From positions 62,001 through 126,000 of IMG/VR virus record IMGVR_UViG_3300036770_006893: DNA of 64,000 nucleotides, one strand, 5' to 3'. Shown here in pieces: positions 15,840-35,900 of the stretch. Numbering within the stretch: position 1 is the stretch's first letter; each line of letters begins with the position of its first letter. The translations under genes and the position numbers were made by a program. The notes under the pieces are model-generated. The model saw nothing but the letters and a program-made list of their open reading frames with translations, did no database searches and had not been told where the DNA came from.

Positions 15840-15844
15840 AAATA

Positions 15845-16159
15845 ATGAATCAAAAAGAAAATAAATTAATCAAAAATATAGAAAAAAAATTTACAACAAT
15901 TATGATAGGTGCTCTCGCTAGATTCGAAAATAATTTCGGTTATTTGTGGGATGAAAATTCACAAAATGGCGATGACTTTTATAATAAATGGGAAAAAACT
16001 AGGAACGAAATTTTAAATTTTGGCAACAACCAGCTGAGACTTGGAGTAGAAGAACTATACGAATTTTTTATCTATAATAAAAAAATAGGATCATATCACT
16101 ATAAGTTTGACACAAAAAACAGCTATAATAACACCAAACAAGGAGATAATCAGCAATGA
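15845..16159 (+). CDS. Hypothetical protein
   Basis: 104 aa, coupled to the downstream gene by an ATGA overlap. Confidence 0.55.
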   Translation: MNQKENKLIKNIEKKFTTIMIGALARFENNFGYLWDENSQNGDDFYNKWEKTRNEILNFGNNQLRLGVEELYEFFIYNKKIGSYHYKFDTKNSYNNTKQGDNQQ

Positions 16160-17161: not shown

Positions 17162-20100
17162 ATGGCATTTAATCTTACGGCAGAAATTAATTTACGCGGA
17201 CCCAGCAACATTAGGAACGTTGTTTCTAATATTAGAAGACAGTTAAATTCTATATCTGTTGACGTATCTCCTTCGGTTAGGAACTCAGATATAAGGTCTA
17301 TAGCAACAACTATTAGATCTAGACTAGCTGGTATTAGCATACCAGTGAATATTGCTGCAAGTAGTTCTTCTATAAGGGCTGTGTCTAGAAATATAAGGAC
17401 TGGAATAGGTAACGTAAACATTCCGGTGTCTGTCAATGTTAGCCAAAGAAGCTTATCGGCTGCCAGAAGGGATATCAATGCCCGACTTAATAACATCAGA
17501 GCAAATGTCAATGTCGTTGTTAATCCCGTTTCAGTTAGAAGTGCTGCTGCTCTTAATGCCAATCTTACCAATCTTAATCAAACATTGACTAATGTCACCG
17601 CGTCAGCGACTTCAGCAGCTACGGCAATCAGAGATTTATCTGCTGCTATGAGAGCAGCTGGCGGAGGAGCAAATGCTTTAACCCAAATTAATACTGCTTT
17701 AAATGTTACTACCAATAATGCATCATCAGCAAATGCAAGCATTAGAAATATGTCCGGAGAAATAGAAAATTTCGGAAGACAAGCGGGATTAGCAATTAGA
17801 AGATTTGCCGCGTTCACTACTGTTACATCTGTTTTTTATGGCTTGGCTAGATCTGTACAGTCTGGACTATCGGCATTTATAGAATTTGATAGGCAGCTAG
17901 TTAGAATATCTCAGGTTACTGGGGATAGCTTAAGTAGTATAAAAAATCTTTCTAATAGTATAACCTCTTTATCTCAACTATACGGAGTATCTTCTGAAAA
18001 ACTAGCTGAAGTAGCTGTTGTGTTGGCTCAAGCTGGGTTATCTGCTAAAGAAACTCAACAGTCTCTTGCGTCTTTAGCAAAGACTACACTGGCTCCATCG
18101 TTTGATAATATTAACGATACTGTGGAAGGTAGTATCGCACTAATGAGACAGTTTGGAATACAAAGTAATCAGCTAGAGCAAGCATTGGGTTCTGTTAACG
18201 CGGTAGCAGCAAAATTTGCTGTGGAAGCTGGTGATATTATTGCAGCTATTCAGAGAACTGGTGGTGTTTTTGCAGCTGCTAGCAAAGGCGTAAGCGAAGG
18301 AACCGATGCTCTTAATGAATTTATTTCTGTGTTTACCAGCGTACGAGCCACTACTCGTGAAAGCGCAGAAACAATCGCCACAGGTTTAAGAACTATTTTT
18401 ACAAGAATACAAAGAGGCGGGACTATAGAAGCCCTAAAAGATTTTGGTATTAGCCTAACGGACGTCGAGGGGAAGTTTGTTGGCGCCTACAAGGCTGTAG
18501 AGCTATTGAGTACTGGGCTATCCAAATTAGACCCAAGAGATTTAAGATTTAGTCAAATCGTAGAAGAGCTCGGCGGCTTTCGACAAATTGGTAAGGTTAT
18601 TCCACTTATTCAACAGTTTGCTACGGCACAAGACGCTCTTCGAGTAGCACAAACTGGTGCTGGTTCTTTATCGGAGGATGCGGCAAAGGGTCAATTAGCA
18701 CTCGCTGTGCAGATAGCAAGAGTAAGAGAAGAATTTTTAGCTCTTATTAGAAGCGTTGGCGATACGTCTAGCTTTAGAACTTTGGTTAAATTAGGGCTAG
18801 ACCTGGCCAGCTCTCTAGTCCAGGTAGCAGATGCTGCAAAAGAATTGATCCCGCTTATAGGAGCATTTGCGGCTTTTCGTGGGGCTCAATCATTAACTAG
18901 GTTTGCTGCTGGCTTTGCTGGCGGAATCAGAGGTACTCCAGCAAGAGGTTTTGCTAGTGGTGGTTATGTTCCTGGGTCTGGCAATAGAGATACTGTTCCT
19001 GCTATGCTTACCCCAGGAGAATTCGTCATTCGCAAAAAGGCTGTTGAAAAAATTGGCGTCAGCAGTTTATCTAGATTAAATCGTAATAATGGCGGCCCAG
19101 TGCCCGCTCAATATTTTGAAGATGGCGGACAAGTACAACGGTTTGGCATAGGAGGAGTTGCCAAGAAAGGTGTAAACTGGAAAAATCTGTCTAAAGGCAG
19201 GGGTAAAAAAGGGCCTCGCGGACCACGAGCCAGATTTGATTTACCGCAACCAGGAGATGCAGACTTTGCTAAATGGCAACGTGAAGTATACGCAGAGTAT
19301 GATGCCGATCCTTCCTTGCCAAGAGTAAGAGTAAATGGTATACCAATGCCACCTGAAATCGCCTATGTCAATGAATTGATAGGAGAGGAGATTTTTAGGC
19401 AAAATTTTAGAAGCCGTAAAAGCAAAAAATCTGGCAAGCTTAAAAAAACACCGCTAGGATTAATAATAAGTGCCGCAAAAATGCCCAGAGGTCCACGAGC
19501 ACCAGCTGGTGAGATGGAAAAAATTATGGCTGGATATCAGCAATCTCCTGAGTTTCAGAAAGAAGCCGTCGGGGCAGGATCTTCCTTATTTTCAACCCTA
19601 AAAGGACCATTAGCATCTTTTAAGAAAGGAGGTACTTTTGGTGGTGTGATAGCTCCAGGCTCAGAAAATGCCACAAAGATAAAGGGCGCTTTAGCGAAAC
19701 TACTGAGTCAGTCATCTGGACAAGATGCTACTAAAGCTAAAACAGCACTAGATAAATTCGATTCATTTATAGCTGGTTCAACACCAGAAAAACCTGGACA
19801 CGTCTCCCATTTTACCTGGGCTATGAATCAGATATTCAAGAAAGGAATAGCAACGTTTGGTAGAGGAGGAAGAGCCTCAAGAAGAATGGGGGTTTTTGAT
19901 TTTGATATGACAACTGGAATAACGAAACAAAAAGAAACACCAAGCCTGTCTGGTTTTAGAGATCCAAAATTAGCAGTGCCAGATATACTAGGAGCAACTC
20001 CAACTGGCCTGGTTGGCCTTATGCGTAGATATGGTGCTTCACAAATTCTTACAGCACGATCCGGTGGACCAAGAGGGGAGATGAGAAGAGCTCTCGGCAC

Positions 20101-23100
20101 CTTTTTTAGACGAAGCGGAGTGATGTTACCGCAATCTAACATAATAACCCTCGGCGACCAAGTAGGATCTCTTAGTACAGCAGAGAAAAAAGCTAGGGCG
20201 CTCTATGCTATAGTTAAAAAATATGGAAAAGTTGATTTTTTTGATGACGACACAGCTAATATAGATGCTGCAAAAATGGTTAGGGGAGTAAGCGCCAGAA
20301 AAGTATCAGTAATGAAAAATTTGGGTGGCTTTGTTCAGAAGTTCATGGCTGGCAAAGCCGTAAAAAGAATGCCCGATTTGCCGCCTGATATTAAGGCGCT
20401 AATAACTAGAGAAGCGCGTCTAGGCATAGGCAAAGAAGACCCAGCACTACAATCCGCCTTATTAAATTTGGTAGCTAAGAGAAATAGATCTGTAGGAACA
20501 ACAGAATTAGCTAGTAGACTTGCGGGCTTAATCAAATCAAATCAATTAACTCCACGACTGGCTAATCAAATGCTGTCTACAGGAGGATTAGCAATACCTA
20601 CAGGACCAGGAGGTAAAACAACCATACAAGCATTATCTTTGGAGGCTCTAGGACCAAAAGACACAACCAAATACACAAGAAATATAGGAGGAAGAGAAAC
20701 AGATATTCTTAGAGCTTCTCCAACACCTGATTTATCAGCACGGCTGACTAGAGATTTAGTGCAAGGCACCAGAATAGGCATTGCTAGATTCATACGAACC
20801 GGATTAACAGAATATGCTATGCAGAGTCCAGAAAATAGACGGAGCCTAATTGATAGGGGAATTAAATTTGATAGCAAAGGCAGGGCAATACCCCCTAGGT
20901 CTGCTGTTGATGCTGCTATGTCGCATGGAGATGCTGGTAATTTTTTGGGCCCATTATTCGAAAAGGGAATCATTGGATTGGGAGCACAAGCTGGACCAAG
21001 CCTTCCTGGAAAAGCAGCACCGATAGACACATCAAGAGTCGGAGATATAGTAGCAAGCATTATGAGAGGAGGGGCGCCGATATCCGCTGAACTCCCAACA
21101 GAACTTAGGGCAGCCAAAGCTAAAACACGAGCATCAGCAGGTATTCCTAATATTAATAAAAGAGGATTAGTCAATCAAATATTGAGATTTTTTAAATTAC
21201 CAGGACTAAAGTTTGCGCAAGGAGGACTCGTTCCTGGTGTGTCTTCTTCACGAGCTAGAGAAGCTATATTAGGAAAACAGCTTAGTGGAGTTGAAATGAT
21301 CAGAGCCGCTAGGCGCGCTGGTTATGATATAGAAGAATTAGACAACGGATTGATTAGGTTATCTCGTAATAATAAGACTATGCACACACTGAGCCGACAG
21401 GAGGCGTCTAAGCTTCTGGGTAGTATGACTACTGGTTATAATCTCGGTGGAATGATACAAAAATTTGCTAGGGGGGGGTCTCCAAAAGATACTGTACCAG
21501 CACTGCTAACCCCTGGTGAGTTTGTAATTAATAAGAAGGCTGCTGCCAGACTAGGATCTAGTAAATTACATCGATTAAATAAAGCTGATAAAATTAGTGG
21601 CTTTAACACCGGAGGAGAAGTTGGTCGTGTGCCAACATTTTCTTCTGGTGGTGATGTTCAGAGATTCTTTTTTGGAGGAAGAGCAAGTGCTAGACCAGGA
21701 ACCGAGGCAAATACATCAAATCTTATGATAGCAGGAAATGTGACGACCCAACTTAGAGAGGTCGCTACTGCTTTACAAGAATTAGGCGCGGCTTCGTCTG
21801 CTTCCGCTGATATTTTAAGAAGAGGAGGTAGAATAAGCGTAGAGTCAGCAAATGCTGCTTATGAAGCTGATATACTAAGAATGAGAGTTGCCGGAGCGCC
21901 AATGGATGCTGTAATTCAGGCAGAAACACGTTTGGCAAATATGAGAAGACAAGCTCAGACTCAAGTAGCTGCACAAAGACAATTAGCCGGCGTTGGCGGA
22001 GCGCAACTAGAGAGAGTAGACACAACGGCCCAACAAAATATACAAAGAATGATACAAAGAGCCCAAAACTCTGGGGTTGATCTCAACGAAGCTCAAAGAG
22101 CTAGAATCGAAGATTTAGGATATCGTAGAGCGGCTCAAGCAGGAGGATTATCAGCAGCTCAAACTGCAGGTTTAAGTGGTAATGATATTAGGCAGTTTAT
22201 TAATAGCGCTATGGGAGATCCTAGAACATTCGAACAAATGAACAGACAGTTTGAGGCTAGAAGACGAGCTGAGTTAAACAATCAATATATTGCTGAAAAT
22301 AGATTTGGTGGTGATCGGAGACGTATACTGCAACAAGCGAGTAGAGATGCTGCTGAAGAAGCCAGAATACGAAGACAAACACTAAATCAAACACGAGGAG
22401 CAGCAGGCCCAGGAGGTACTCGTGGACAGCGAATGCAACAAGGTATGTTTGCGGCTAGTTTTGCACTACCCATGCTAGCACAAATGCTTGCTGGAGATCC
22501 TTCCAGAGCAACTAGTGCTGGTGGAGCCGCAATGTCTGCTGGTATTCAGGGTGGTGCTAATGCTTTAGCTTTGGGTACAATGTTATCAAGCCTCGTCCCC
22601 CCAGGACTGCCTCAAGTTTTTGTCGGCGTTGCAACAGCTGCCGGGGCTGTGGCTCAGGGATTTATAGATGCGCGTAATGCGACTATAGAATTTGAAAAAA
22701 ATATGTCAGCTAAAAAAGTGGAATTTGCGATAGCCGACACGGTAAGGCTTTTTGATAAACTGTCTAAAGATATTAAAAATATAGATGTTCAAAACGCTAT
22801 AGGTGATAAGCTAGTAGAAGCCGCCAAAGCCGCAGAAAGATCAATAGAAATTCAATCCAATACAGCCAGAGCATTTTGGATAAATATGATAGATGCTTTT
22901 GCTTCAAACGGTAGAGAAGCAGCACAAAGGGCCCAAATTTTAGAAAAATATGGAACCACAGCTTATTTATCAACAACTACTATAGGCCAATCTTTTATGG
23001 GAGGTTCTGGAACAGCGCAACAAAGAGCTGAACGCCGCAGGTCTAACTTTGCTATGGAAATGGCTCCAGAGCAAGCTAGAGAAATTTCTAGACAATTTTC

Positions 23101-26100
23101 TGAAATAGCAGATAGTTCAAACAAGCTTTTAGAAGAAAAAATTCGTAGTGGATTAAATATTGAGCAGTATATAAATACAGATGAATTTAAGGGTCTTAGC
23201 CAAGCAATAGCACTATCAAATGCCGCTATTGCTGAACAAATTCTCAATATTAGAGCCAGTACTGTTTTGACCCAGGCTCAAAAAACAGCACAAGAAAAAC
23301 TTATTATATCAACATATGCTGAACAAGAAGCGCGTAAAAGAGCAGCTGCAATAACGAGAGAGCTTGAAATAAAACAGGCCCAAAAAGTTGTGAATCAATT
23401 GGCTCGGTCTTTGGATCGTATGTTTGGTAATATGGAACAGGCTATAAATAAGACAAATTTTGCACTAGAAAAAATGAGTCGAGATTTGGATCTGGTTTCA
23501 TCCTCTCTAACCGGACAGGCTAAATTAGGTGAAAGATCAATACAGGCGATTAATGTATTGCAAAACCCTAGAGCCTATGGCTCCGGAGAATTGAATATGG
23601 CTCGCGGTCAAGCTGCTGGATTTTTTGGAGATAGTGGAAATATCATTCGTGGACTATTGACTCTTGGAGATGATATTGAAGCTAATATAATGGGCACTAT
23701 TAATAGGACATTAAGAGATACTAGAGATGATTCTCCTGGTAAAATAGCTATAGCTATACAAAAATCCGTTAAGGAAAAATTAGCAGGGCTAGCTTTACCA
23801 AAAGATCTATCGGATAAATTAGCTCGTGAAGTATCCAAGGCTCTAGAAGAAATACGTAAAGATGGTGAAGACCAAGCGGATTTTACACAGCTGGAAGAAA
23901 AACTACAAGATTTAAACAAAATTATTGATAGTACAACGAAAGCTCAAGACATAGCTATTAAAGCGTTAGAAACATGGCAAAATGCTCTAAATTCATATTC
24001 TTCTTCTATGAATTCTTTGGTCGATCTACAAATAGACTATCAGTCCAGACTAAGAACCAGTAATGATATTCTTTTGGATGGTCAGGCATCATTAGCTAGA
24101 TCTCTCGGTAAAGATATTGGACTGGAGTCTATAGCTAATCGACGCAATTTAAGAATTGCTCAACAAACTGGAGGAGCTACGGCCCCACAGGATATTTTTC
24201 GCAACATAAATAGACTAGAATTATTGAGGGCGCAACAAGAAAACGCTTCGAATGTAGCTGCTCAAAGAGGCCCATCTGGAGCTAAAGATTTTGTAGAAAT
24301 GCAAAATAACCTTAGGTCTACTAATGTTGCACTAAGAGAAAATTTTGATGCGCTAAAAAATCTTGCTGAAAATTCCGATTTAGCATCAGCCGCTCTTAAT
24401 AAGATACAAGAAGCACAACAAAGACAACAGGGAAAAGTTTCTTTTATCGAAAAGCTTGTGACCTCAACACCAGAAGAATTAAGTGGACTCAATCGAGCTT
24501 TCGTAAGACTGCAAAACAATATTAATGGTCAGGTTAATACTATCAATAATAGTGTTGGTGCCCAACGAGCCTATATTGAAGCCATCAGAAGTGGATCCAA
24601 TGCTTTTGAAGCTATGAAGGCTGCGCAAGATGCTTTTGCGAACGAAAGAAGAGAGACTCTGTCGGCTCTAAATGATATACTACCATTTTTAGGAGGAGGA
24701 AATAAAGCAAATCAAATAAGAGCCAATACTTTAGAATCAATGCTAGCTGAGTCTGGTGTTGGTGTCTCTCCTATGTTTCAAGATATATTAAACTCTCTTA
24801 GAGATCCAGAACTAGATCCAGAAACACAAAAAGCCATTGCTCTTTATGAACAGGCCAACATTCTTCAGGTTAAGGCCAACGATTTTCTTGCTCAAATTAA
24901 TCTAAAACTAGGTGAACAAACAGCAGAAGCAGCAGCCAAAGCTATAGCAACGGCTCTTTCTTCTGTGGTGCTAACATTCAAAAATGCTGAACAAGCAGAC
25001 ATAAATAGAGGACTTATTCCACAAAATAGAGCTAAAGGAGGAATAATTTATGCCTCCAAAGGAGTTTTTGCACCAAAAGGAACAGATACTGTTCCAGCGA
25101 TGTTAACTCCTGGAGAATTTGTCGTTAATAAAAATGCTACAGCAAAAAATTTACCTCTATTAAAAAGCATTAATAGCCAGACTCTTAGTTCTGGAGGTAA
25201 AGTAAAGTATTATGCTCGTGGAGGCTTAGTAAGTAGTTACTTAAGTACCAACGCTCAGTCTAGGGACGATTTTCAGCAAACAAAAGACAAATTTCTAGAT
25301 CTTTCTGAAAATGAACAACTATTTCAGGATGTGTCAAAGACATCACTATTTAGATTACCAAGCACATATATCAGAAAACCACAAGCTGGATTACAAACAC
25401 CCAGTAAATCATCTCCCGCAAGAGAAAGATACGATGATCGGCCAAATAAATATCGCTTAAAAGAATTATATTCTAATTCTGGAGAAATACTACCAGGATA
25501 CGTAACTAGTAAAATAGATTTAGGCCCCTATTATTATAGTGTTCCGTCTATGGCTACGGTCGCTAACAGAGAACTAGGCAAGTATTTAGAGCCTGTTAAT
25601 TTGATTCCTGCTGGTATTAAAACCACAATTTTAGGACTAGACTCCACAGATTTAGACATATCGTCTAAAAAATATAGCAAAAAAGATTTTGCTGAATATA
25701 AGAAAAAATTAGAGACGTTAAATATAGAAAGATTTAATTGGATTAACAACCCAGCAAGCTTTGCGCTCAGAGCATTAGAGGGTGTTACACAAGAATATCC
25801 TTCAAATATAGATCCAACCGCTTTAAACAATAGATTTTTTGATCCTAATTCTAAGCAAAAGCTAAGCTCTATCTATCCATCAGATGCAGGTCTCAGAACT
25901 TCTTCTGTTCCTTTTAAATATGCTAAAATTTTATCTGACAACCGATCTGATTATTTCGGTATTACTACTGGTTCAATAGGAACAGAGCCTCCAAATGGAG
26001 ATTTTTCATCTGGCCCCACTTTATCTAAAACAATAGATACAATGTGGGCTAAGGTATGGAATATAGATAAAAATAAAGCTTTGTCTCCACAGAGAGCCAA

Positions 26101-29100
26101 AGATATACTTAACTATAATCGCAAACAATTTAAGCTTATAAATAAAACTGTTCAAGCAGCTAAAGATAATTTTAAAGATATAGAGCTAGAAGATTCTGGC
26201 GAATTAAAAGACTATTTTGAGCTACAGCAGCAGTTGGGTAATCTATATAATAATTTTTCTATATACGAGGACTTTAATAAGCTGGATTTATTTGCAAATC
26301 CGCTATTATCTAATGCTAAATCACTAACAGTATTGTCTAATACTTCTGTTGCTAGATCAGATCTAAAAAAATATATCGAAAACCAACAAGCCCAGCTCGC
26401 TCAAGGAGTCGCCCCAGACAATAACGATAATCCAATCCTTATTGGTCTTAGAGATCCGCTTCCGCCAGATCTACAAGACGCAACCAACAAGTGGGTTAAA
26501 AAAACTGAATTTGATATTTTTTCTAGAGATGGGACCGGCCCAGTCAAAACTTTCCCATTCTTAATTAATGCAGATGCCAGAGATTTAGGCGAGGGTTTTA
26601 TGAAGAGAGCCGCTGTTGCTCTACAGGCCCAAAAAGATGCTATAGAAACAAGCATGGTAATAGATAATAATAAAATGACGCTTACGCTTGGCGCCGGTAA
26701 GAACATAGAGCTCCCCTATTCTGCAACATACACAAAATATAGTGGTCCTTTGTGGGATTTAAACAATAATACTTTTAGTGATGATAAAAATAAACAGCTC
26801 AAAGATTTATTCCTTCCAGATAAGGGTGCTGAAAATTCTATTTTTTCTAGTTTAGATACTAATGGAAGTAGATTATTTAAAAGGGGTGGTGTTTTTGATC
26901 TAAATAATATTCAACAAAGTATACCAGCTGACAATATCAATAAATTAATAGATTTGGTAAAAAATAATTCTGAACAAAATTTAATAGATAAAGAAATACA
27001 AAATATAAAAAATCAATCATCATTAACATTTAGACATATTGGAGATAATCAGGGATCACTAATTAAACTACAAAGAGCTATTGGTAAAGAAGTTTTTGTA
27101 GGCTATTCTCAATTAGCAAACACACCTGTTGATTTTGGAGCGTTTGTTGCTCAAGGTGTTATAGACTATGCTAAAAATTTAAAACAAGAAGCTGGAATAG
27201 CAGCTGGTCGTGCTCAGGGAGCAGATGATCAAGACCGAGTAGTATCAGATGTTCCGATGGCATTGCAACAACTAACAAAAGGAGCATTGAATGTATTTGG
27301 TAGAAGGCCTATTCCAGGTATAGGTCGTGGATGGCTAGCAAATAACATAAGACCGCTTATTGGATTAATGTCTAGACAGGGTCGCGGCAGAGCACCCGGT
27401 CTTACTAACGATCAAGCTAGAGGAGCATCTGCGTATATTAGAGATGTGATGAATAATGTTGGTGGATATGTTAATCAAATATCCGGAAGAGTATCCAATC
27501 CTGTGCTATACAATAGCTTAAAGGATACTTTAATTCTTATACAAGGTGCCTATAAATCATTTGATGCGCTGGCCAGATCAGATAGTGCAGATTTAGCACA
27601 AATGCTGAAATCTAATCTGGATCCAGAATCTATATTCCGTAGTTTTGGTTCTGGTGCTATGCTTGATAGAATAGCCATGAGCGAACTATCTGGCGACTAT
27701 AAGAATATTCTTGGTCAGCAGCTACGTGGGTCAAAGATAGCAACGGTTGGTGATAATGGCGATATTAAGCTACAAGAAGCGGCCAATCTTGAATTTAGAA
27801 ACTATAAAGACTTAATCAAATTGGCCATCAACCCGTATAATGAGTTTTCTTCTGTAAAAACTAGAAGAGGTATTTTTGGTAAGCTTACGAACGATATTTC
27901 TGGTGCTGTTGATAATAGGGGTATGCCTTATTTTGATCCTAACACACTCAATTTCTTATTAACTTCGCTCAATCAGCTAGATAAATGGTATGGTGGTGTT
28001 GGTCCTTGGCTAGGTCAAGACTATCTCTTTGATAAGACCTTAGACCCGGATCCTGCTACACGATCTCAAAAATTCCTGGCTAGTTTGCAGAAGGCCCAAG
28101 GAATATATGAATTATCTAATGTTGCCTATCAAAATCTTGGTGGGGCTGGTAAGTTTGGTCCAGTTTTACCAAATAAAGAATGGTTTCAAAATCGTATAGA
28201 TGCTGGCAACTTTGCTACCGGCGGTATGGTTTATGCGTCCGGTGGAACACTAGTTAACTATCAGCCACGAGGCACAGATACTGTTCCTGCTATGTTAACT
28301 CCGGGAGAGTTCGTGGTCAACAGATCTGCTACAAGAAAAAACCTGCCACTATTACAGCAAATTAATAGCGGTTACTTAGCAGAAGGCGGTATGGCCGAAA
28401 GTGCTGGTGTTAGTAGATTAAGATGGACTCCAGAAGGACGAACACGAGCTATAGAACAAAAGGACACAATCACCCCAAAACTAAACAATATAAATAAAAA
28501 CGTTCTCAATAATTTTACTAGTATTACATCTATTCAAAAAGATATTAAAAATATTAAAGATAGCATAAATAACAATACGCAATCTTTACAACAAACTATA
28601 AGCCTACTAAATATTAAATTTACTGAATTACAAAACCTATCTCAAGCCTTGGCTCCGTTTGTTTATAGTCAGTTACTGGTGGCTTTAAGAAATTTCTGGA
28701 GTAGTTTAGGAACAGCCATTATAACACAGGGACTCGGTAATGGTGCGCCATGGCCTCCTGCTCCGTTTAGCGATGGAGGAATTGTATATGCTAGCAAAGG
28801 ACAGCTCATTAATTTTCAACCAAAGGGAACCGATACTGTCCCGGCAATGCTTACTCCGGGCGAGTTTGTTGTTAATGCTAAAGCAACTAAAAATAATTTG
28901 GGATTATTACAAAGTATAAATAATGGAGTTGGTGGGTATAATAGGGGTGGAGTGGTTTATTTGGAAGATGGCGGCTTAACTCCTGGAGCAAAACAATCAT
29001 TAATAGACTTACAAAATCAAGGATATAATTTACAAGATATTGTATCTGGTAAAACAAGAATTCCTGGTATTATAGTAGAGACATCTAAAAAACAATATGA

Positions 29101-32100
29101 TCCTATGATGCCAACAAAACCGGCCCCAAACATAGAAACATATAGAGAAAATCCAAAATTATGGAACGGATTTAAAGACTCTAGTGGTTTTTGGTGGAAT
29201 AAAAGAGGAGAATCTGTCATAAGCGCATATGGGACTCCCCCAGTATTGCCAAATTTTCAAGAAAGAATGCAAGCATTTGAGTCTATTGTAAGTGCTTTTG
29301 CCGGGGCGGGCGGAGTAGGAGGTGGTCGCGGAAAACTAGCAGATGTTCGTGGCCTGCCTGCTGGAATGCCAATGCAGAGAAACGCTCCCGGACCATTAGG
29401 AACTAAAGTCGCTATTCCATATCTTATTGGTAGACCAAATCCCAATAATGCACCAAGAGCTAATTCAATGGGTCTCACATTAGACGCGATTAGAGATCCG
29501 CTAACAGGAAACTACTACGTATCAGATACTCCCGCAAGAAATATTACTATTTCTGGACGCCAAGGATTACCAGCGCCAAAAACTAGACAAAGAACAAAAT
29601 CACCTCTAGATTTAGAAAATGGTAAAATACCAGATTCTATTACTAATCCCAAATCCAAAGAATTTATGCATCTTGCGATAAAAGAAATGATTGGATATAC
29701 TGAATTCATGAATCTGGTTAAGCTAAAAGTACAAAGATCAGATAGGACATACTCTAGCTTATTAAAATTTTTAGCCTTAGATATATTTCCAAAAGGAAAT
29801 GCTTATGGAGTTGATTCTCTAGATAAAGCTATTTCATTTTTTAATACTCCAGAAGGTATAGAATTATATAATACAAAAATATCTCCAAAAATAGGCGTTG
29901 TTCCAGAGATAGGTGGATATAACGCATCTATAATTAATCAAAATTCTAAAACAGGTGGCGGAGGCATTACAGGAAGACTATTAAAAGAATTATTTCAACA
30001 AAATATATTTCATATTAGTAAAAGATCAGCAAATGTTCCAGACGATCTTAATTCCAGAATGGCGTCGTTGATTCCCCCAACAGCTGGATTGCTATATGAT
30101 GACAATATAGCAAAACTATTATCTTCCGCTGGCGTTACGCCAAAAGTAGATTCGAATAGAGTTAGTTATGTATTTGATGTCGCTGAAGCAGGGAAAGACT
30201 GGGGGTTACTTACTCCAGATCAAAGGGCCCATCTACAACAATTTGCTCCAAAAGCAACTGGCAGCGAATCATCTAATATGAAAAGAGGTCAGCTTAGGAC
30301 ATCATCCAGAGAAAGATTAGGTGATGGGCCGCCTAGCTTATCGAAATTTGGAACAGCCACTCCTAAAAAATCTTTTCACGGATCAGGATCAGAAATTATT
30401 CAAGTAGACCCAATGAAGCTGAACCAGGGTATGCTTGGTGAGGGTTTTTATGTGGGTTTTGATGCTAACGAAGCACCTATTAATTTTTTAAAGATGAGAT
30501 TAGACAGCTGGTTACTAGCTAACAAGCTAAAACCAGGAAATATTACACCAGAGCAATTAGCGCAATTTAAGGGTGGTATATATCCAGTTGATATATTAGG
30601 AGGCATTGATGACTTTTTGGCTGCTGATCAAATTCTAAAAGACAATCCGGCAGCGTTAGCAAAAATAGAAAATATATACAAAGACTTAGGACTAAGAAAA
30701 GTTTCTCTTGGACCAATAGAATATAAAAATGATCCAACGACAGGAAGAGCAAAAGCAGTAAGAACAGAAGGACCGCTTGATCTACCATCTGCCACAGTTA
30801 TGCAGGTTTACGACAATATTCAAAACCAGCTAGCAGCTAAATATGAAACTGAATTTGCTGGTAAATCCAATATTCCTGATCCAAGATTTGAGGCGCTCAC
30901 AAGATCAGCTACAGATATGAGAAATATATTTGTAAAATATGGCATACCCGGATTTACCGATTTAAATAATGCTCGTAGTCAAGGCTCGATGGCAGCTATA
31001 TTTGATTTGAATAGAATTAAATTAGGTAAGGCATATATTCCTGATAAAATACTCAAAGAAATAATGATGCCCATTGATCAAAATACTTATAAAGATATTG
31101 ATGGCGACTTAGAAATATTAGAATCTGTAAATAAAAAGAAAGGAGGTATAATTTATGCTAGCAAAGGCCAGTTTATAAACTTCCAACCTCGTGGCACCGA
31201 TACTGTTCCCGCAATGTTAACGCCTGGAGAATTCGTAGTTAACCGAACGGCCACACAGAAAAACCTACCTCTGTTAAAAGCTATTAATAGCGGTGTTGAC
31301 GGATATAGCAATGGAGGAGTTGTTTATTTAGCTGCTGGTGGCAGGCCACAGCGTACAACTCGAGATAAAAATAAGCTTGATATTAGAGAAATAGATAATA
31401 GATTCAGGTCGCAAATGACCAGTCGCAATGCTCAACAAATGGCCGAGGCCGCCGCAAACAGAGAAGGCAAGCTATGGGTATTCATGGTTAAGACTAGAGA
31501 TAATAATGGCGCAGAAACAACGGGCTTTTTAACAAAGGATCCTAATAACCCCAATCAGCCGGCACCAAAAAATATTCCGCCACAAACAGAATCTTTACTT
31601 GCGAATAGACTAGATGAAATATTTACTCTAAGAGCAAGAAATGAAAAAGAGGCCATGGATGCCTACAAAGAGATGAATGTAGCCGGACTGTTACCTGAAG
31701 TCAAACCAGCCTCAGCTCAACAAGCACTGAACAAGGCTAGAAAAAAATGGATGCAGCAACCACTATATGCCAAGATTTTTGATGAACTAGCTTATCAAAT
31801 TAATTTAGATCGAAATCAATTTAGCATATTTAATCCTGATTTCTTCAATCGAAATGTTAATGTTGATGAAAATATAAAGCCAATTATGGCTATTGTTGAT
31901 AATATGGATCCCAACAACCCCGCATCTGTTGCTTTGGGCGTTCCAGCAATATTAACTAAATTAAGACCAATAGTTCAAAGAATTAATTATTTGCGACACA
32001 TTATTAGAAACAATGAGCAGGCCCTAACAGCAGTTAAGAGTGCGATAGCCTCAGGCCTAAATATAAACGATCCTGCTAATATGAGAAAAGCTTTCGAAGG

Positions 32101-32965
32101 CAATCCTGCTACAAAAATTAATGAGGAACAACTTAATGGCGCCAAGCCCGAATTGGCTGGTGGTGAACAAGTATTAAATAAGCTTGGAACTAATCCTGTA
32201 CTAGCTAATCTTGGACGAGATCCTAGGTTTAAAGAGATAGTATCCACGTTTGGTTATGGTCCAGGAGTGGCTGTATCCACATTTGAGCGCCGTGTAGAGC
32301 AGATGGCTGCTCCACCAAAACTACTAGCCTCTGGTGGTAGAGTTACCTATGCTAGTAACGGACAGCTTATTAATTTCCAGCCACGGGGTACCGATACTGT
32401 ACCAGCTATGTTAACACCAGGAGAATTTGTGGTTAATCGCGAAGCGGCCAATAAGCACTTGTCTCTATTGCAAGCTATTAATAACAATAATTTTGCAAAT
32501 GATTCTGTTTTAACTTTAAGTCGAGGTGGTTTTATTTCCCCAGCATATTTACGTAATGGTGGATCAGCACCCTCTTTGGCCGGTTTATCTGATATGGTAT
32601 CAAAACTTACTCAGAGCATACAATCAGCAGTAGAAACAGCTATAACCAAAGCTTTTGAAAATTCTGAGCTATTGCGATCTAATTCTAGCGATGGTGTATC
32701 TGATAATGGTGCTGTTGTTGATCAAATAGCGGCGTTTACTAGAAATTTGGGAGATTTGGCGAATCGACTAGAGACGATATCTGTACCACCAGAAATCACT
32801 ATACAAGGACGACAAGACATCAATGTTAACGCTAATGGATTACAGGTACTTTCCAGTCTAGACCCATCTATGAAACAGCTCGCTATGAATATGATCAAAA
32901 CCGCATTTGATAATTTGGCCACAAAAAATCCCGGAACTTTAGATTTTAATGTAGACTATCCATAG
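17162..32965 (+). CDS. Giant tape measure protein (5267 aa), TP901 family, with embedded HAD and ADP-ribosyltransferase-like domains
   Basis: PhageMin_Tail/TP901 core near 17870-18700 (LAQAGLSAKET...LMRQFG...AVAAKFAVEAGDIIAAIQRTG...AETIATGLRTIFTRI); long Ala/Arg/Gln helical tracts; hydrophobic stretch near 22440-22670; follows tube and chaperones. Confidence 0.92.
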   Translation: MAFNLTAEINLRGPSNIRNVVSNIRRQLNSISVDVSPSVRNSDIRSIATTIRSRLAGISIPVNIAASSSSIRAVSRNIRTGIGNVNIPVSVNVSQRSLSAARRDINARLNNIRANVNVVVNPVSVRSAAALNANLTNLNQTLTNVTASATSAATAIRDLSAAMRAAGGGANALTQINTALNVTTNNASSANASIRNMSGEIENFGRQAGLAIRRFAAFTTVTSVFYGLARSVQSGLSAFIEFDRQLVRISQVTGDSLSSIKNLSNSITSLSQLYGVSSEKLAEVAVVLAQAGLSAKETQQSLASLAKTTLAPSFDNINDTVEGSIALMRQFGIQSNQLEQALGSVNAVAAKFAVEAGDIIAAIQRTGGVFAAASKGVSEGTDALNEFISVFTSVRATTRESAETIATGLRTIFTRIQRGGTIEALKDFGISLTDVEGKFVGAYKAVELLSTGLSKLDPRDLRFSQIVEELGGFRQIGKVIPLIQQFATAQDALRVAQTGAGSLSEDAAKGQLALAVQIARVREEFLALIRSVGDTSSFRTLVKLGLDLASSLVQVADAAKELIPLIGAFAAFRGAQSLTRFAAGFAGGIRGTPARGFASGGYVPGSGNRDTVPAMLTPGEFVIRKKAVEKIGVSSLSRLNRNNGGPVPAQYFEDGGQVQRFGIGGVAKKGVNWKNLSKGRGKKGPRGPRARFDLPQPGDADFAKWQREVYAEYDADPSLPRVRVNGIPMPPEIAYVNELIGEEIFRQNFRSRKSKKSGKLKKTPLGLIISAAKMPRGPRAPAGEMEKIMAGYQQSPEFQKEAVGAGSSLFSTLKGPLASFKKGGTFGGVIAPGSENATKIKGALAKLLSQSSGQDATKAKTALDKFDSFIAGSTPEKPGHVSHFTWAMNQIFKKGIATFGRGGRASRRMGVFDFDMTTGITKQKETPSLSGFRDPKLAVPDILGATPTGLVGLMRRYGASQILTARSGGPRGEMRRALGTFFRRSGVMLPQSNIITLGDQVGSLSTAEKKARALYAIVKKYGKVDFFDDDTANIDAAKMVRGVSARKVSVMKNLGGFVQKFMAGKAVKRMPDLPPDIKALITREARLGIGKEDPALQSALLNLVAKRNRSVGTTELASRLAGLIKSNQLTPRLANQMLSTGGLAIPTGPGGKTTIQALSLEALGPKDTTKYTRNIGGRETDILRASPTPDLSARLTRDLVQGTRIGIARFIRTGLTEYAMQSPENRRSLIDRGIKFDSKGRAIPPRSAVDAAMSHGDAGNFLGPLFEKGIIGLGAQAGPSLPGKAAPIDTSRVGDIVASIMRGGAPISAELPTELRAAKAKTRASAGIPNINKRGLVNQILRFFKLPGLKFAQGGLVPGVSSSRAREAILGKQLSGVEMIRAARRAGYDIEELDNGLIRLSRNNKTMHTLSRQEASKLLGSMTTGYNLGGMIQKFARGGSPKDTVPALLTPGEFVINKKAAARLGSSKLHRLNKADKISGFNTGGEVGRVPTFSSGGDVQRFFFGGRASARPGTEANTSNLMIAGNVTTQLREVATALQELGAASSASADILRRGGRISVESANAAYEADILRMRVAGAPMDAVIQAETRLANMRRQAQTQVAAQRQLAGVGGAQLERVDTTAQQNIQRMIQRAQNSGVDLNEAQRARIEDLGYRRAAQAGGLSAAQTAGLSGNDIRQFINSAMGDPRTFEQMNRQFEARRRAELNNQYIAENRFGGDRRRILQQASRDAAEEARIRRQTLNQTRGAAGPGGTRGQRMQQGMFAASFALPMLAQMLAGDPSRATSAGGAAMSAGIQGGANALALGTMLSSLVPPGLPQVFVGVATAAGAVAQGFIDARNATIEFEKNMSAKKVEFAIADTVRLFDKLSKDIKNIDVQNAIGDKLVEAAKAAERSIEIQSNTARAFWINMIDAFASNGREAAQRAQILEKYGTTAYLSTTTIGQSFMGGSGTAQQRAERRRSNFAMEMAPEQAREISRQFSEIADSSNKLLEEKIRSGLNIEQYINTDEFKGLSQAIALSNAAIAEQILNIRASTVLTQAQKTAQEKLIISTYAEQEARKRAAAITRELEIKQAQKVVNQLARSLDRMFGNMEQAINKTNFALEKMSRDLDLVSSSLTGQAKLGERSIQAINVLQNPRAYGSGELNMARGQAAGFFGDSGNIIRGLLTLGDDIEANIMGTINRTLRDTRDDSPGKIAIAIQKSVKEKLAGLALPKDLSDKLAREVSKALEEIRKDGEDQADFTQLEEKLQDLNKIIDSTTKAQDIAIKALETWQNALNSYSSSMNSLVDLQIDYQSRLRTSNDILLDGQASLARSLGKDIGLESIANRRNLRIAQQTGGATAPQDIFRNINRLELLRAQQENASNVAAQRGPSGAKDFVEMQNNLRSTNVALRENFDALKNLAENSDLASAALNKIQEAQQRQQGKVSFIEKLVTSTPEELSGLNRAFVRLQNNINGQVNTINNSVGAQRAYIEAIRSGSNAFEAMKAAQDAFANERRETLSALNDILPFLGGGNKANQIRANTLESMLAESGVGVSPMFQDILNSLRDPELDPETQKAIALYEQANILQVKANDFLAQINLKLGEQTAEAAAKAIATALSSVVLTFKNAEQADINRGLIPQNRAKGGIIYASKGVFAPKGTDTVPAMLTPGEFVVNKNATAKNLPLLKSINSQTLSSGGKVKYYARGGLVSSYLSTNAQSRDDFQQTKDKFLDLSENEQLFQDVSKTSLFRLPSTYIRKPQAGLQTPSKSSPARERYDDRPNKYRLKELYSNSGEILPGYVTSKIDLGPYYYSVPSMATVANRELGKYLEPVNLIPAGIKTTILGLDSTDLDISSKKYSKKDFAEYKKKLETLNIERFNWINNPASFALRALEGVTQEYPSNIDPTALNNRFFDPNSKQKLSSIYPSDAGLRTSSVPFKYAKILSDNRSDYFGITTGSIGTEPPNGDFSSGPTLSKTIDTMWAKVWNIDKNKALSPQRAKDILNYNRKQFKLINKTVQAAKDNFKDIELEDSGELKDYFELQQQLGNLYNNFSIYEDFNKLDLFANPLLSNAKSLTVLSNTSVARSDLKKYIENQQAQLAQGVAPDNNDNPILIGLRDPLPPDLQDATNKWVKKTEFDIFSRDGTGPVKTFPFLINADARDLGEGFMKRAAVALQAQKDAIETSMVIDNNKMTLTLGAGKNIELPYSATYTKYSGPLWDLNNNTFSDDKNKQLKDLFLPDKGAENSIFSSLDTNGSRLFKRGGVFDLNNIQQSIPADNINKLIDLVKNNSEQNLIDKEIQNIKNQSSLTFRHIGDNQGSLIKLQRAIGKEVFVGYSQLANTPVDFGAFVAQGVIDYAKNLKQEAGIAAGRAQGADDQDRVVSDVPMALQQLTKGALNVFGRRPIPGIGRGWLANNIRPLIGLMSRQGRGRAPGLTNDQARGASAYIRDVMNNVGGYVNQISGRVSNPVLYNSLKDTLILIQGAYKSFDALARSDSADLAQMLKSNLDPESIFRSFGSGAMLDRIAMSELSGDYKNILGQQLRGSKIATVGDNGDIKLQEAANLEFRNYKDLIKLAINPYNEFSSVKTRRGIFGKLTNDISGAVDNRGMPYFDPNTLNFLLTSLNQLDKWYGGVGPWLGQDYLFDKTLDPDPATRSQKFLASLQKAQGIYELSNVAYQNLGGAGKFGPVLPNKEWFQNRIDAGNFATGGMVYASGGTLVNYQPRGTDTVPAMLTPGEFVVNRSATRKNLPLLQQINSGYLAEGGMAESAGVSRLRWTPEGRTRAIEQKDTITPKLNNINKNVLNNFTSITSIQKDIKNIKDSINNNTQSLQQTISLLNIKFTELQNLSQALAPFVYSQLLVALRNFWSSLGTAIITQGLGNGAPWPPAPFSDGGIVYASKGQLINFQPKGTDTVPAMLTPGEFVVNAKATKNNLGLLQSINNGVGGYNRGGVVYLEDGGLTPGAKQSLIDLQNQGYNLQDIVSGKTRIPGIIVETSKKQYDPMMPTKPAPNIETYRENPKLWNGFKDSSGFWWNKRGESVISAYGTPPVLPNFQERMQAFESIVSAFAGAGGVGGGRGKLADVRGLPAGMPMQRNAPGPLGTKVAIPYLIGRPNPNNAPRANSMGLTLDAIRDPLTGNYYVSDTPARNITISGRQGLPAPKTRQRTKSPLDLENGKIPDSITNPKSKEFMHLAIKEMIGYTEFMNLVKLKVQRSDRTYSSLLKFLALDIFPKGNAYGVDSLDKAISFFNTPEGIELYNTKISPKIGVVPEIGGYNASIINQNSKTGGGGITGRLLKELFQQNIFHISKRSANVPDDLNSRMASLIPPTAGLLYDDNIAKLLSSAGVTPKVDSNRVSYVFDVAEAGKDWGLLTPDQRAHLQQFAPKATGSESSNMKRGQLRTSSRERLGDGPPSLSKFGTATPKKSFHGSGSEIIQVDPMKLNQGMLGEGFYVGFDANEAPINFLKMRLDSWLLANKLKPGNITPEQLAQFKGGIYPVDILGGIDDFLAADQILKDNPAALAKIENIYKDLGLRKVSLGPIEYKNDPTTGRAKAVRTEGPLDLPSATVMQVYDNIQNQLAAKYETEFAGKSNIPDPRFEALTRSATDMRNIFVKYGIPGFTDLNNARSQGSMAAIFDLNRIKLGKAYIPDKILKEIMMPIDQNTYKDIDGDLEILESVNKKKGGIIYASKGQFINFQPRGTDTVPAMLTPGEFVVNRTATQKNLPLLKAINSGVDGYSNGGVVYLAAGGRPQRTTRDKNKLDIREIDNRFRSQMTSRNAQQMAEAAANREGKLWVFMVKTRDNNGAETTGFLTKDPNNPNQPAPKNIPPQTESLLANRLDEIFTLRARNEKEAMDAYKEMNVAGLLPEVKPASAQQALNKARKKWMQQPLYAKIFDELAYQINLDRNQFSIFNPDFFNRNVNVDENIKPIMAIVDNMDPNNPASVALGVPAILTKLRPIVQRINYLRHIIRNNEQALTAVKSAIASGLNINDPANMRKAFEGNPATKINEEQLNGAKPELAGGEQVLNKLGTNPVLANLGRDPRFKEIVSTFGYGPGVAVSTFERRVEQMAAPPKLLASGGRVTYASNGQLINFQPRGTDTVPAMLTPGEFVVNREAANKHLSLLQAINNNNFANDSVLTLSRGGFISPAYLRNGGSAPSLAGLSDMVSKLTQSIQSAVETAITKAFENSELLRSNSSDGVSDNGAVVDQIAAFTRNLGDLANRLETISVPPEITIQGRQDINVNANGLQVLSSLDPSMKQLAMNMIKTAFDNLATKNPGTLDFNVDYP
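18989..32431 (+). repeat. Seven dispersed copies of the peptide motif DTVPA(M/L)LTPGEFV inside the TMP
   Basis: Asp codons begin at 18989, 21488, 25085, 28277, 28832, 31199 and 32393 (aa 610, 1443, 2642, 3706, 3891, 4680, 5078). Each copy is flanked by (F/Y)xxGG half-motifs. Confidence 0.95.
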
Positions 32966-32974
32966 GATAATTTT

Positions 32975-35900
32975 ATGAATCAACCAATACAAATTTATAA
33001 TAACATAGGCTGTGAGTTTATTCTAGACAACAATAATTTTATTATCGGCACAGCTTTAAAAGGCTATAATACTCTCGATAATAATCATGTGGGTAGTTAT
33101 ATTCCCTATTTAGTAAGAAATATATCTAGAGATCAGATTATAGCATGGGAGATAGGGGTTGGGTTTGTAGAGAAGGCTGATAGTAAGATCATAGTTTCTA
33201 GACATAATGTAATACAGTCATATGGGTCGATTGAGTCCCCCGGACAAAAAAACTTCTATTTATTTGCTAATGCCGATGGCTATAATAGTGGATTCAACAA
33301 CGTTGTTGTTGCAACAAGCGATTTTTTTGCTGGGACATCCAGAGCCTGCTACTTAATAGAAAAAAACGGTATCACTAAAGTCAAACTAATTGATCCAGCC
33401 AAAGCTAAATCTGTAGAACTTCAATTTAAGATTATATCTAGCGATGAAAATAGTGTAGTAGAGATATCTGATGACCACAGTTTTCGCTATGTGTTAAAAT
33501 ATAATCAAAAATATCTATCTATAGTCTCCGATGGAAGTAAGTGGAGGATATTACTTAGTCCATCATCTAATAGTAGCAATATGCTCTCAGCACTATCTGC
33601 CTCAAGCGATTTTTCTATACTTGGTGATCCAGCCGGAGACGATGGGTCATTTCAGTACAAGGTCGGAACTAGTTTTTCTGGCGGTCCCGTATATTTAGGT
33701 TCTGATGATAAGATTCTTTTTGGTCCTGATAGCATAGAATCTAACGCTAAAAGCATTATACCAACTTCTGGTAATTATGACACCATCATTAATAATACTA
33801 AAAATAAATCGGACTTTATTGTTCATGGAAGTGGTGTGCCAGATGGTTATCTACCAAAAAATCTTATTTTCACCTATGATGGTAAGCTTGGATTAAATCT
33901 CCCTTCTGGGGCTAAGCCACAAACTGCTCTTCATATAATCAACAATTCTTGCAGAGAAAGCATCAGGATCGAAAATCTCAGCGACTGTCCAACGCATATA
34001 CCCAACGTCACACTATATCACAAGCCATCTGGTGTTTCTGATGATACTATTATAAGTAAAGTTGTTTTCGCTAGTCGCGACTCCAATAATAACAAAAAGG
34101 ATTATGCTGTACTACAGACAACCGCTCAAAAAGTTGATCCGTCGGATGCTACTGGAAAGTTTGACTTGATTTTGGCGTCCGGATATCAGAGCGTAAACAC
34201 ACTTTCTTCCGATCCGTTGTCTACTGTTTTAGGCTATTTATCTGATTACTATTTGGTTGCTAACAGCACATCTGGTATTCGAATGATAGCACCCAGATCA
34301 AATAATCAAATTTTTGTATCAGATAGTTTAGCTGGTATGTCAGGTGGTATTGTATCAGTTTCTGGAGGTAGTGCTGTAAATATCACCTCCACCGGAACCA
34401 TAAATCTTAATCAAGCCGTTATTATTAACGGTATTAATATTGGTATGCCTTATATTGAACAAAATAAAGTATTAGCAGTTAATTCTCAAGGTTTACTGGC
34501 ACCAGCTACTAATTTCACTATTAATGGCGTAGGATCAAATAAACTATTGACTACTGACGCTAGTGGTGTTGTTACTGGTGCTTATAGTGACGATTCATTT
34601 TTGCTCACAGATGGCGACATAACATGGAGTAAATTTCCTCCTAGACTAGGCAATGTTTGTTTGAGACAAATTACTCCCATAGAAGATTTTCCCGTTAACG
34701 AATTTGCTGTAGGAGATCAGCTAGCAATAGTAACAGGAGTTGCACCAAATCAAGGCACCATATATCGCAATATAACTTCTATAGACAGAACAGATGATCT
34801 TATTAGCTATATCTTATTAGATCAAAACGTTACAACTATTGATTCTACCATATTTTGTTATTCGATCACCAAAGGCGGCGTGTTAACTATTCAGGTTAGA
34901 ACAGAAGACGGCACAGAATCCCAGGCTACTGCCACCATATTAAGCACAAGACCAGACACAAACACAGTGTTCAATACTAAACAAAAAAATATTAATTTCA
35001 CCGTATATGGTATTGAGGACACCCCAGCTCTACATATTATGGCCAAAGCAACTACGGTGCCTGTAAATTCTGGAGTTTATAACAAATTTGCTACTATCGA
35101 TGAGCCATTTGCTAGCATACCGAATCCACTAGGAGTAGGAATAGGTACTTCTCACAACAGTGTTAATTTTGCCAATATCCCTTCTGATTTATGGCTAAAC
35201 AAAGTTACATCTGTTGGTACTAATGGTAAGCCAAGTTTCTACGGCACATATGATCAAAACGGAAATGTTTACGAATGGGTAGAAGACACAAACCCAGCAT
35301 CTATATCGATAAACCAGAATGTTTGCGGTGGCTCATGGAAAACTTTAACTGCTGAGGGTTTGAGGAGTGTAATTTCTACACCAGCTAATTTAGCCTTAGA
35401 AGATGTTGGATTTAGAATATGTTCTAGATATGGTTATTCTGATGATGCGATATCGCCAACCATCGGACTTTCTTTTGTTGCTGTTTCTAATTTAGATAAT
35501 ATAGAAGACAACTCTTTTATATATACAGAATCATACTCTAATCGAGACGAATTAAATCTTCCTCCCGTACCATCATCTATTATTAATTTGGGCAAGGTTC
35601 AGCATCCATATCGCATATCGACATACGAGATTACCAACGCTCAATATATTAAATTTTTAAACTCGGTTAATAAAACTGCTATTTTCGATCTGTATAACGA
35701 TAATATGTCATCCGCTATAGTTGGTGGAATACTGAGGTCTGGTTCTGATGGCGACTATGTTTATACAACCAAAACCAACATGGGCGACAAGCCAGTTGTG
35801 TATGTAAATTACTTAAGCGCTATCAGGTTTATCAATTGGTTGCATAACGGTGCTCCCGATAGTGAAAATTTTGAATTAGAAGATATCGAGGATGGTGCGT

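Follow-up and report, generated by a model that had tools for sequence, protein, structure and literature searches.

A giant phage tape measure protein built of seven lambda gpH-like modules and exchangeable cassettes, one of them a predicted HAD-fold enzyme

Tape measure proteins (TMPs) are usually seen as rulers and channel formers, carrying at most a cell-wall enzyme. The case of phage T5 has shown how such an enzyme can be separated from the ruler. During assembly, T5 pb2 is cut after R1127, beside its anchoring segment; the last 42-43 residues of the shortened protein (pb2*), which form its new C-terminus, settle into a crevice in the hub once this has opened, and the C-terminal part (pb2C), which bears a muralytic metallopeptidase, is expelled to the periplasm (PMC10038345). 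Here a 5267-residue TMP is described, encoded at positions 17162..32965 (+ strand) of a 64,000-nucleotide stretch of the virus record IMGVR_UViG_3300036770_006893 (positions 62,001 to 126,000; this whole stretch is called the window below). A single module of about 70 residues occurs seven times in this protein, and unrelated segments, called cassettes, lie between the copies. In its layout of an anchor and a cut followed by an enzyme, the pb2*/pb2C pair would be the nearest working analogue. In contrast to the TMP of the window, with its seven modules and its haloacid dehalogenase (HAD)-like and ADP-ribosyltransferase (ART)-like cassettes, T5 pb2 has one junction and one cell-wall-enzyme cargo, and no similarity to the module was detected in it.

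The module itself is found in JBD30 gp46 and in lambda gpH, about 90-130 residues before a C-terminal helix through which the protein docks in the tail tip. Unlike the protein of the window, these TMPs of 853-1158 aa have one copy and no embedded enzymes, and the module is unresolved in all their cryo-EM maps. The models of the lambda TMP begin at residue 818 (PMC10721106) and those of the TMP of mycobacteriophage Douge at residue 1658 (PMC13033339), which leaves the gpH module and both Douge modules outside. Residues 1022-1066 of JBD30 gp46 are predicted to form a hook made of two helices and a short hairpin; by analogy with T5, the JBD30 authors proposed a cut of the TMP at 1066, after which the hook would hold it in place within the baseplate (PMC11445458). 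Lambda gpH is also cut, within its Gly-rich C-terminal region, at a site and by a protease that are both unknown (PMC12617516). Douge gp16 and other actinobacteriophage TMPs have the module too, twice in the case of Douge, but never in more than two copies, in proteins of 1300-1700 aa, and neither an exchange of cassettes nor enzyme cargo between these copies is on record (PMC13033339).

Cargo has been described in other TMPs. Those of TM4, SPbeta (YomI, annotated as a transglycosylase) and phiIPLA35 embed peptidoglycan hydrolases, which act on the host at entry (PMC12617516); this is muralytic envelope cargo, however, and these TMPs are not made up of exchangeable cassettes set between modules. 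Another parallel is offered by polyvalent proteins (Iyer et al. 2017, PMC5512222), giant chains of effectors of variable content, including ARTs of the H-Y-D type, that are thought to enter with the DNA. Unlike the TMP, they are tied to MuF/head packaging or to conjugation and contain embedded Zn-metallopeptidases; the same article makes no mention of tape measure proteins (PMC5512222). TMPs with muralytic enzymes, the cut and release of T5 pb2C and effector-chaining polyvalent proteins are already known. No description could be found in the literature of a TMP family with up to nine hooks, module-bounded shuffling and non-muralytic enzyme cassettes.

The gene consists of a single frame of 5267 codons, with an ATG start and zero internal stops. 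A public gene call (P0001, 5179 aa) begins 88 codons later, at 17426 instead of 17162, and the longer form appears to be the better choice because relatives align from its residue 3. Judging from family matches, the product is a genuine TP901-type TMP: its N-terminal core (17837..18874, +) matches TIGR01760 (tape_meas_TP901) of NCBIfam over aa 226-571 (E 4.4e-21) and PF10145 (PhageMin_Tail) of Pfam over aa 265-470 (E 1.7e-22), and several PHROG TMP families also match the protein. Its counterparts in cultured phages are distant: tblastn of the N-terminus gave only ~25% identity, with SPbeta-type TMPs, and a megablast search of cultured phages with the whole gene gave no match.

The core peptide of the module, DTVPAMLTPGEFV, is found exactly at residues 610, 2642, 3706, 3891, 4680 and 5078, and the second copy, DTVPALLTPGEFV, with Leu in place of Met, at residue 1443. 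The motifs are separated by 833, 1199, 1064, 185, 789 and 398 residues, and 190 residues lie between the last one and the end. Translation of the frame thereby reproduces, to the residue, the seven DTVPA(M/L)LTPGEFV copies, positions, spacers and ~190-residue tail that had been listed in an earlier sequence-only reading of this DNA. The wider context given there is recovered as well by alignment of the seven neighbourhoods, with GG upstream, an invariant core, then A, L, N and GG downstream. The module, of ~70 aa, has the consensus GG-h-h-Y-A-S-x-G ... G-T-D-T-V-P-A-M-L-T-P-G-E-F-V-V-N ... L-L-x-x-I-N ... GG. In a tiled self-comparison of the TMP, where it extends over 70-140 aa, it is the sole internal repeat, the spacers being mutually unrelated.

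All seven modules are encoded on the + strand. The first three lie at 18929..19132 (aa ~590-657, core 610-622), 21428..21631 (the Leu variant, aa ~1423-1490, core 1443-1455) and 25025..25228 (aa ~2622-2689, core 2642-2654). Modules 4 and 5 follow each other closely, at 28217..28420 (aa ~3686-3753, core 3706-3718) and 28772..28975 (aa ~3871-3938, core 3891-3903), and module 6 is found at 31139..31342 (aa ~4660-4727, core 4680-4692). Module 7, at 32333..32536 (aa ~5058-5125, core 5078-5090), stands at the position of the single lambda and JBD30 copy. The C-terminal tail that follows it (32537..32962, +; aa 5126-5267) is presumed from its position to be the hub-docking end, by analogy with the tails of described TMPs (PMC10721106, PMC11445458).

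The seven core peptides are identical, yet their codons agree at no more than 45% of positions. This low figure indicates that each copy is held separately by protein-level selection; it also rules out recent duplication, gene conversion or chance as the source of the repeat. A further 371 module copies are present in 80 related proteins, with core positions conserved at 94-100%. To trace the element beyond this family, a profile of 35 copies (A4) was searched against all PDB sequences. It matched Douge gp16 (PDB 8zdo) at 959-1030 and 1411-1474 (E 8e-19), JBD30 gp46 at 1013-1067 (E 1.4e-4) and lambda gpH at 723-786 (E 2.5e-4). The gpH element, which had been named in the sequence-only reading, is thus a homologue of the module. 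With tblastn, the module is found in TMP genes of 176 cultured-phage records (224 matches), usually in one copy and sometimes in two. One module lies ~60-170 aa before the C-terminus, as in lambda and JBD30, and the six internal copies depart from this known pattern. The idea that the module could be a docking or processing junction would agree with what has been proposed for the single-copy element in JBD30 and T5 (PMC11445458, PMC10038345).

A length-restricted family search, seeded with residues 1-300, gathered 81 proteins of 2954-7872 aa, among them at least 80 metagenomic relatives, on contigs of up to 230 kb. A hidden Markov model of the module detects 2-9 copies (adjacent hits merged) in 79 of these 81 proteins. 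The first module always comes after the N-terminal domain (median start aa 519), and the tail that follows the last one has a median length of 123 aa and does not exceed 200 aa in 85% of the relatives. Module number is correlated with protein length (r = 0.68). The 484 inter-module cassettes cluster into 155 types, of which 102 are singletons. If the cassettes of the window protein are numbered S0 to S6 from the N-terminus, S0 (aa 1-609) is present in all 80 relatives and S2 (aa 1443-2641) in most of them; S3, S4 and the C-terminal tail occur in many, and S1, S5 and S6 are limited to the three to five closest relatives. As a stand-alone query, S6 recovered one fragment and nothing more.

Breaks in homology between relatives fall at the modules. 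Homology between the window TMP and its relatives ends just past module 1 (query residues 647-682), resumes just before module 2 (1426-1435) and ends again past module 4 or 5; within S1, additional breaks fall at short GG motifs. In the related locus L018, where the flanking genes share 60-77% identity with their counterparts in the window, the TMP has 4032 aa and five modules, as compared to 5267 aa and seven modules here. The relatives thus behave as had been predicted from the window alone, with cassettes that vary in number and content between a conserved module and conserved flanking genes. A second, smaller junction class can also be recognized. Its two motifs, F-x-R-GG-R-A-S and N-L-GG-x-x-Q-K-F, flank the HAD cassette described below, at 19820-19885 and 20312-20390 (aa ~887-908 and ~1051-1076); such GG mini-motifs occur elsewhere in the TMP, and recur in many relatives where sub-cassette homology starts or stops.

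The family backbone consists of the N-terminal TP901 domain, a core cassette with a glycine-zipper-like stretch, the last module and a tail of ~120 aa, with the exchangeable cassettes in between. In the window protein, the core cassette is S2, and its hydrophobic Gly/Ala-rich stretch (22445..22666, +; aa ~1762-1835), weaker than a classical transmembrane helix (no KD19 >= 1.8), is a candidate membrane-channel segment. S2 and S4 look helical. Cassette S3 (25229..28216, +; aa ~2690-3685) is richer in aromatics and in Asn, Ser and Thr; it is present in ~20 relatives and has no family match. Other cassette types exist in the family, as indicated by Pfam matches to EF-hand motifs, PF03983 and the Gly-zipper family PF13441 among the relatives P0003 and P0014, P0048, P0050 and P0052, and P0059 and P0079; none of these is found in the window protein.

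The best characterized cassette lies within S1, between the two GG mini-motifs, and corresponds to a HAD-fold phosphatase (19886..20311, +; aa 909-1050). The HAD motifs are found in order (D913/D915/T917, T964, K1009/K1010 and D1028-D1030), in a region that reads GVFDFDMTT ... ILTARSGG ... STAEKK ... VDFFDDD. The catalytic residues (nucleophile Asp, second Asp, Thr, motif-II Thr, Lys and DDD) are invariant or nearly so in a 12-sequence alignment. Used alone as a query, aa 909-1050 finds free-standing proteins of 143 aa, with ~50% identity, which start exactly at the first motif. The AlphaFold model of the cassette has a pLDDT of 72.9 and a pTM of 0.70. When it is compared to the PDB with Foldseek, almost all matches are HAD phosphatases (AphA, 5'-nucleotidase III, YihX, the phosphatase domain of sEH; prob 1.00), with TM scores of 0.42-0.47, and of 0.42-0.58 over the top matches overall. 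Against a viral library, the matches are phage phosphatases, PNKP phosphatase domains and a deoxynucleoside-5'-monophosphate (dNMP) phosphatase, with E down to 3e-6. Curated models have no HAD match to the cassette, in Pfam or NCBIfam, even at E <= 10; its profile found nothing by sequence in the PDB, and tblastn against cultured phages gave no match. From the predicted model and the conserved motifs, aa 909-1050 is accepted as an enzyme of HAD fold whose active site is intact, and what had been noticed as a HAD signature turns out to be a complete domain.

The history of this cassette can be partly followed. In one relative (P0038), it is 81% identical to that of the window protein and the N-terminus only 41-56%, which implies that the cassette moved between TMPs. 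One free-standing homologue (143 aa, 8001-8432 of contig L020) is encoded among small ORFs on a 31.7-kb phage-like contig, which also has the cyanophage-type Pfam families Kyano_Gp96, GP88 and DUF7249. The HAD cassette seems to have its origin in an ordinary phage gene of the early region. Phage PNKP-type and dNMP phosphatases, such as T4 PseT and T5 dmp, act early in infection, which fits the delivery of a pre-made enzyme.

Another sub-cassette, in S5, is ART-like (30335..31081, +; aa 4392-4640). Three candidate residues, H4406 (FHGSG), Y4430 (GEGFYVG) and D4615 (IFD), follow a pattern, hYHG[ST]G / G-x-G-x-Y-x-G / h-h-[YF]-D, that is conserved in 10 homologues, and H-Y-D is the configuration described for the ARTs of polyvalent proteins (PMC5512222). 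A phmmer search with aa 4100-4679 over 1.84 billion representatives finds this part in other module-bearing TMPs only, with no free-standing family; the domain is located at different positions in different TMPs, and twice in P0013. The relative P0082 weakly touches DUF3990 (E 0.043, below the cut-off), which is an ART-clan family (PMC7955679), and tblastn of the region against cultured phages gave no match. As judged from its sequence pattern, aa 4392-4640 may be called ART-like, an assignment that is plausible but unproven. S5 also contains the sub-cassette S5a (29933..30322, +; aa ~4258-4387); homologues of it stand alone as proteins of 148 and 194 aa (P0084 and P0091), which match no known family. 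As a multi-effector chain, the TMP has one enzyme fold confirmed, one probable and a high cassette diversity; most cassettes are uncharacterised, with no fold that can be recognised. Most of the 5267 aa shows no enzyme family in Pfam, NCBIfam and PDB searches.

The composition of the chain is also peculiar. The window TMP has no Cys at all (0/5267), compared to a mean of ~1.0% in 17 other large ORFs of the window, and only 20 Cys are counted in 400,668 residues over the family. His is depleted about four-fold (12 in 5267 aa). The exclusion of Cys covers the variable cassettes too, as would be expected if the whole chain travels unfolded through the tube and an oxidising envelope. A loss of Cys by embedded HAD copies relative to the free-standing ones was considered and is ruled out, the latter having only 0-1 Cys. 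Near-absolute over 400,000 residues, this exclusion is a constraint for any model of TMP transit.

A cargo-carrying mosaic TMP, iterating the T5 pb2*/pb2C layout, is the interpretation that is given, as a whole, slightly better than even chances; confidence is much higher for the anatomy. The N-terminal domain would serve assembly, the hydrophobic stretch would contribute the channel, and the last module with the tail would dock in the hub. Extra modules would let further cassettes be spliced in frame. Strong protein-level selection on each copy implies that the module must act at every site, and its likeliest roles, from what is proposed in JBD30, T5 and lambda, would be to anchor the chain in the hub and/or to direct a nearby cut. 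The JBD30 hook would then be the counterpart of the pb2* end in T5, which is severed from pb2C and its enzyme. Some cassettes would be structural or channel-forming and others enzymes, such as the HAD phosphatase, of PNKP or dNMP-phosphatase type, and the probable H-Y-D ART-like domain. The tail lumen would carry them, and they would leave it before the DNA and be released in or near the host, where active cargo could reach the periplasm or the cytoplasm. That modules act as cleavage-and-release junctions is only a tentative suggestion, by analogy with the single-copy systems. Similarly doubtful is the fuller version, in which every module copy docks in the hub and directs a cut, as an eject-and-release junction that can be used again and again, and the TMP is a programmable, recombination-shuffled carrier that feeds serial effectors (phosphatase, ADP-ribosyltransferase and many cassettes of other kinds) into the host ahead of the DNA. 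The term "polyvalent protein", initially applied to this TMP, does not suit it: no peptidase family was found within the TMP in Pfam and NCBIfam, so that it is devoid of a recognizable embedded processing peptidase, and the carrier belongs to a tail block and not to a MuF or conjugation setting. It should not be filed with the polyvalent proteins, although it may work alike.

Several observations weigh against a cargo-carrying TMP. The sequences show the anatomy, the homology of the module, the family mosaicism with breakpoints at modules, the selection on each copy, the HAD fold with its catalytic motifs and the exclusion of Cys; packaging, docking or cleavage, ejection and activity are inferred. 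No Arg or other evident cleavage signature is conserved after the module. Profile A4 has no match in T5 pb2, and the link to the T5 anchor has therefore the structural prediction of the JBD30 authors as its sole source. Mycobacteriophage Marshawn gp22 has a single internal module, 430 aa from its C-terminus, with neither a Pfam domain nor cargo that can be recognised; this ordinary TMP is also Cys-poor (1 in 1334). Over the whole 5267 aa, Pfam, NCBIfam and PHROGs recognize TMP families alone, and phmmer of all four large TMP segments against the PDB gave nothing meaningful. Of the ART proposed in the sequence-only reading, the conserved H-Y-D pattern stands, but fold and family searches bring no signal: the domain has no Pfam match at E <= 10, the AlphaFold model of aa 4100-4679 (from a 4-sequence alignment) is mostly unconfident coil, with a pLDDT of 36 (24-53 over the motifs), and Foldseek on this poor model returns noise. 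S5 may be a largely disordered linker. The order of exit raises another difficulty, since leaving C-terminus first would put the ART-like cassette out before the channel segment, which is awkward for an NAD-dependent enzyme; to our knowledge, the periplasm has no NAD. Finally, the tail lumen is ~4 nm wide and three or six folded 16-kDa domains do not fit side by side in it, so that the cargo would need to be unfolded or staggered.

A rival explanation is a plain giant ruler. The TMP would only measure a tail of ~400-800 nm, its modules would be structural punctuation for oligomer register or for tube and hub docking, and the enzyme-like pieces would have been captured and be roleless. The TMP-like composition throughout (no Cys, low His, few aromatics) looks in agreement with such a ruler, as do the restriction of Pfam and NCBIfam matches to the TMP core, the helical appearance of S2 and S4, the correlation between module number and length, and the ordinary siphophages with one or two modules and no known cargo. 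This explanation is nevertheless considered unlikely, in view of the HAD catalytic residues, which are all invariant in embedded and free-standing forms at ~50% overall identity, of the confident HAD fold kept by the embedded domain, and of hyperdiverse variable cassettes (102 singleton types), typical of conflict-driven cargo. Cleavage could also be a matter of assembly only, in a polyprotein whose modules are cleavage sites and whose variable cassettes, discarded or used as scaffold or chaperone in tail morphogenesis, never reach the host. Lambda gpH and T5 pb2 are indeed both cut in tail assembly (PMC12617516, PMC10038345), and in lambda, one half of the gpHC copies may not remain in the virion (PMC12617516). 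However, the cleaved piece stays in the tail tip in T5 and lambda, it is not obvious what a nucleotide or polynucleotide phosphatase would do while tails are assembled, and Cys is excluded from the variable cassettes as if they too crossed the tube and the envelope, which makes an assembly-only polyprotein rather improbable.

The coincidence of homology breakpoints with modules could be explained at the DNA level, if these were conserved linkers for in-frame recombination between TMP genes, with no protein function. It is hard to reconcile such linkers with identical peptides that share only 45% of their codons, with a core conserved at 94-100% in 371 copies and with an element conserved from Actinobacteria phages to lambda, and this explanation is very improbable. 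An assembly chimera or a mis-called ORF might be suspected from the metagenomic origin of the record and from the different start picked by one gene caller, but the 15.8-kb frame is uninterrupted, the region is seen in a second sample (L017) and 80 independent relatives have the same architecture, so that an artefact is scarcely credible. Set beside these explanations, the cargo-carrying TMP remains the favored reading, at the modest strength indicated above.

The surroundings of the gene look like a tail block. Three upstream genes (347, 104 and 305 aa; 14796..17073, +), 68-77% identical in L018, are at the position of tail tube and assembly-chaperone genes. Downstream lies a tail protein of 1875 aa (32975..38602, +), FGE-sulfatase-like and with FN3 repeats, whose L018 counterpart is 60% identical to it. 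The order and sizes of the genes agree with the usual site of a TMP, and the arrangement is conserved in L018; the neighbours could not be named from family searches, and no frameshifted chaperone pair was recognised among them. The 347-aa protein (14796-15839) is weakly similar to the product of L018 2049-2516, the homologue of its 305-aa neighbour (16156-17073), with 21% identity over 160 aa (E 2e-8), and these two upstream tail genes may share a domain. Also in the tail block, an ORF of 478 aa (42850-44286, +) has a match to a PHROG 'protease' family (E 9e-9) and a sub-threshold one to Pfam Trypsin (E 0.0035), with no match by sequence in the PDB; its product is a possible candidate for a TMP-processing protease. 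A sulfotransferase of 266 aa (7195-7995, +; PF13469 E 1.4e-14, PF00685 E 1.2e-11) is encoded among the structural genes, and together with the FGE-sulfatase-like tail domain it could be a hint that sulfated glycans take part in recognition of the host or modification of the virion. The 352-aa product of 10109-11167 (+) resembles in its N-terminus an L-shaped tail-fibre assembly family (PHROG), and its C-terminus is a proprotein-convertase P-domain (PF01483, E 9e-8). Two giant ORFs further downstream (46483-52716 and 52706-60202, +; 2077 and 2498 aa) match nothing in Pfam or among the PHROGs.

The window belongs to a 224-kb IMG/VR contig. When the downstream gene or the ART-like region was used to look for related loci, only the window's own contig came back. 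The owner of the TMP is an uncultivated jumbo phage, probably from freshwater. A paper on the 'moraphage' jumbo lineage proved unrelated, moraphages being myoviruses in which the TMP is not identified. A scan of genome contigs for the host led to two short contigs of metagenome-assembled genomes (MAGs) with contradictory taxonomy (Alphaproteobacteria and Thermoplasmatales), so that the host is not assignable; one relative is labelled as a Sphingobacteriia MAG, an equally weak pointer.

In this metagenomic family, the TMP has grown four- to nine-fold through the repetition of one element, with interchangeable cassettes between the copies, and at least one of these is predicted to be an intact enzyme of a kind that phages normally express early. 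The seven selected copies described here, together with ~370 in the family, define precisely the conserved residues of the module. They bring a handle on the lambda gpH element, which stands next to the place where gpH is cut, a site that, like the protease, has escaped identification since 1974. An eject-and-release junction would make of this family, in the tail lumen, what polyvalent proteins are among head-packaged effectors, and a counterpart of polymorphic toxin systems. If the cassettes are ejected, the tail lumen would be a second route for delivering pre-made effectors with the genome, and cargo could naturally be loaded onto a phage tail by in-frame splicing at the module.

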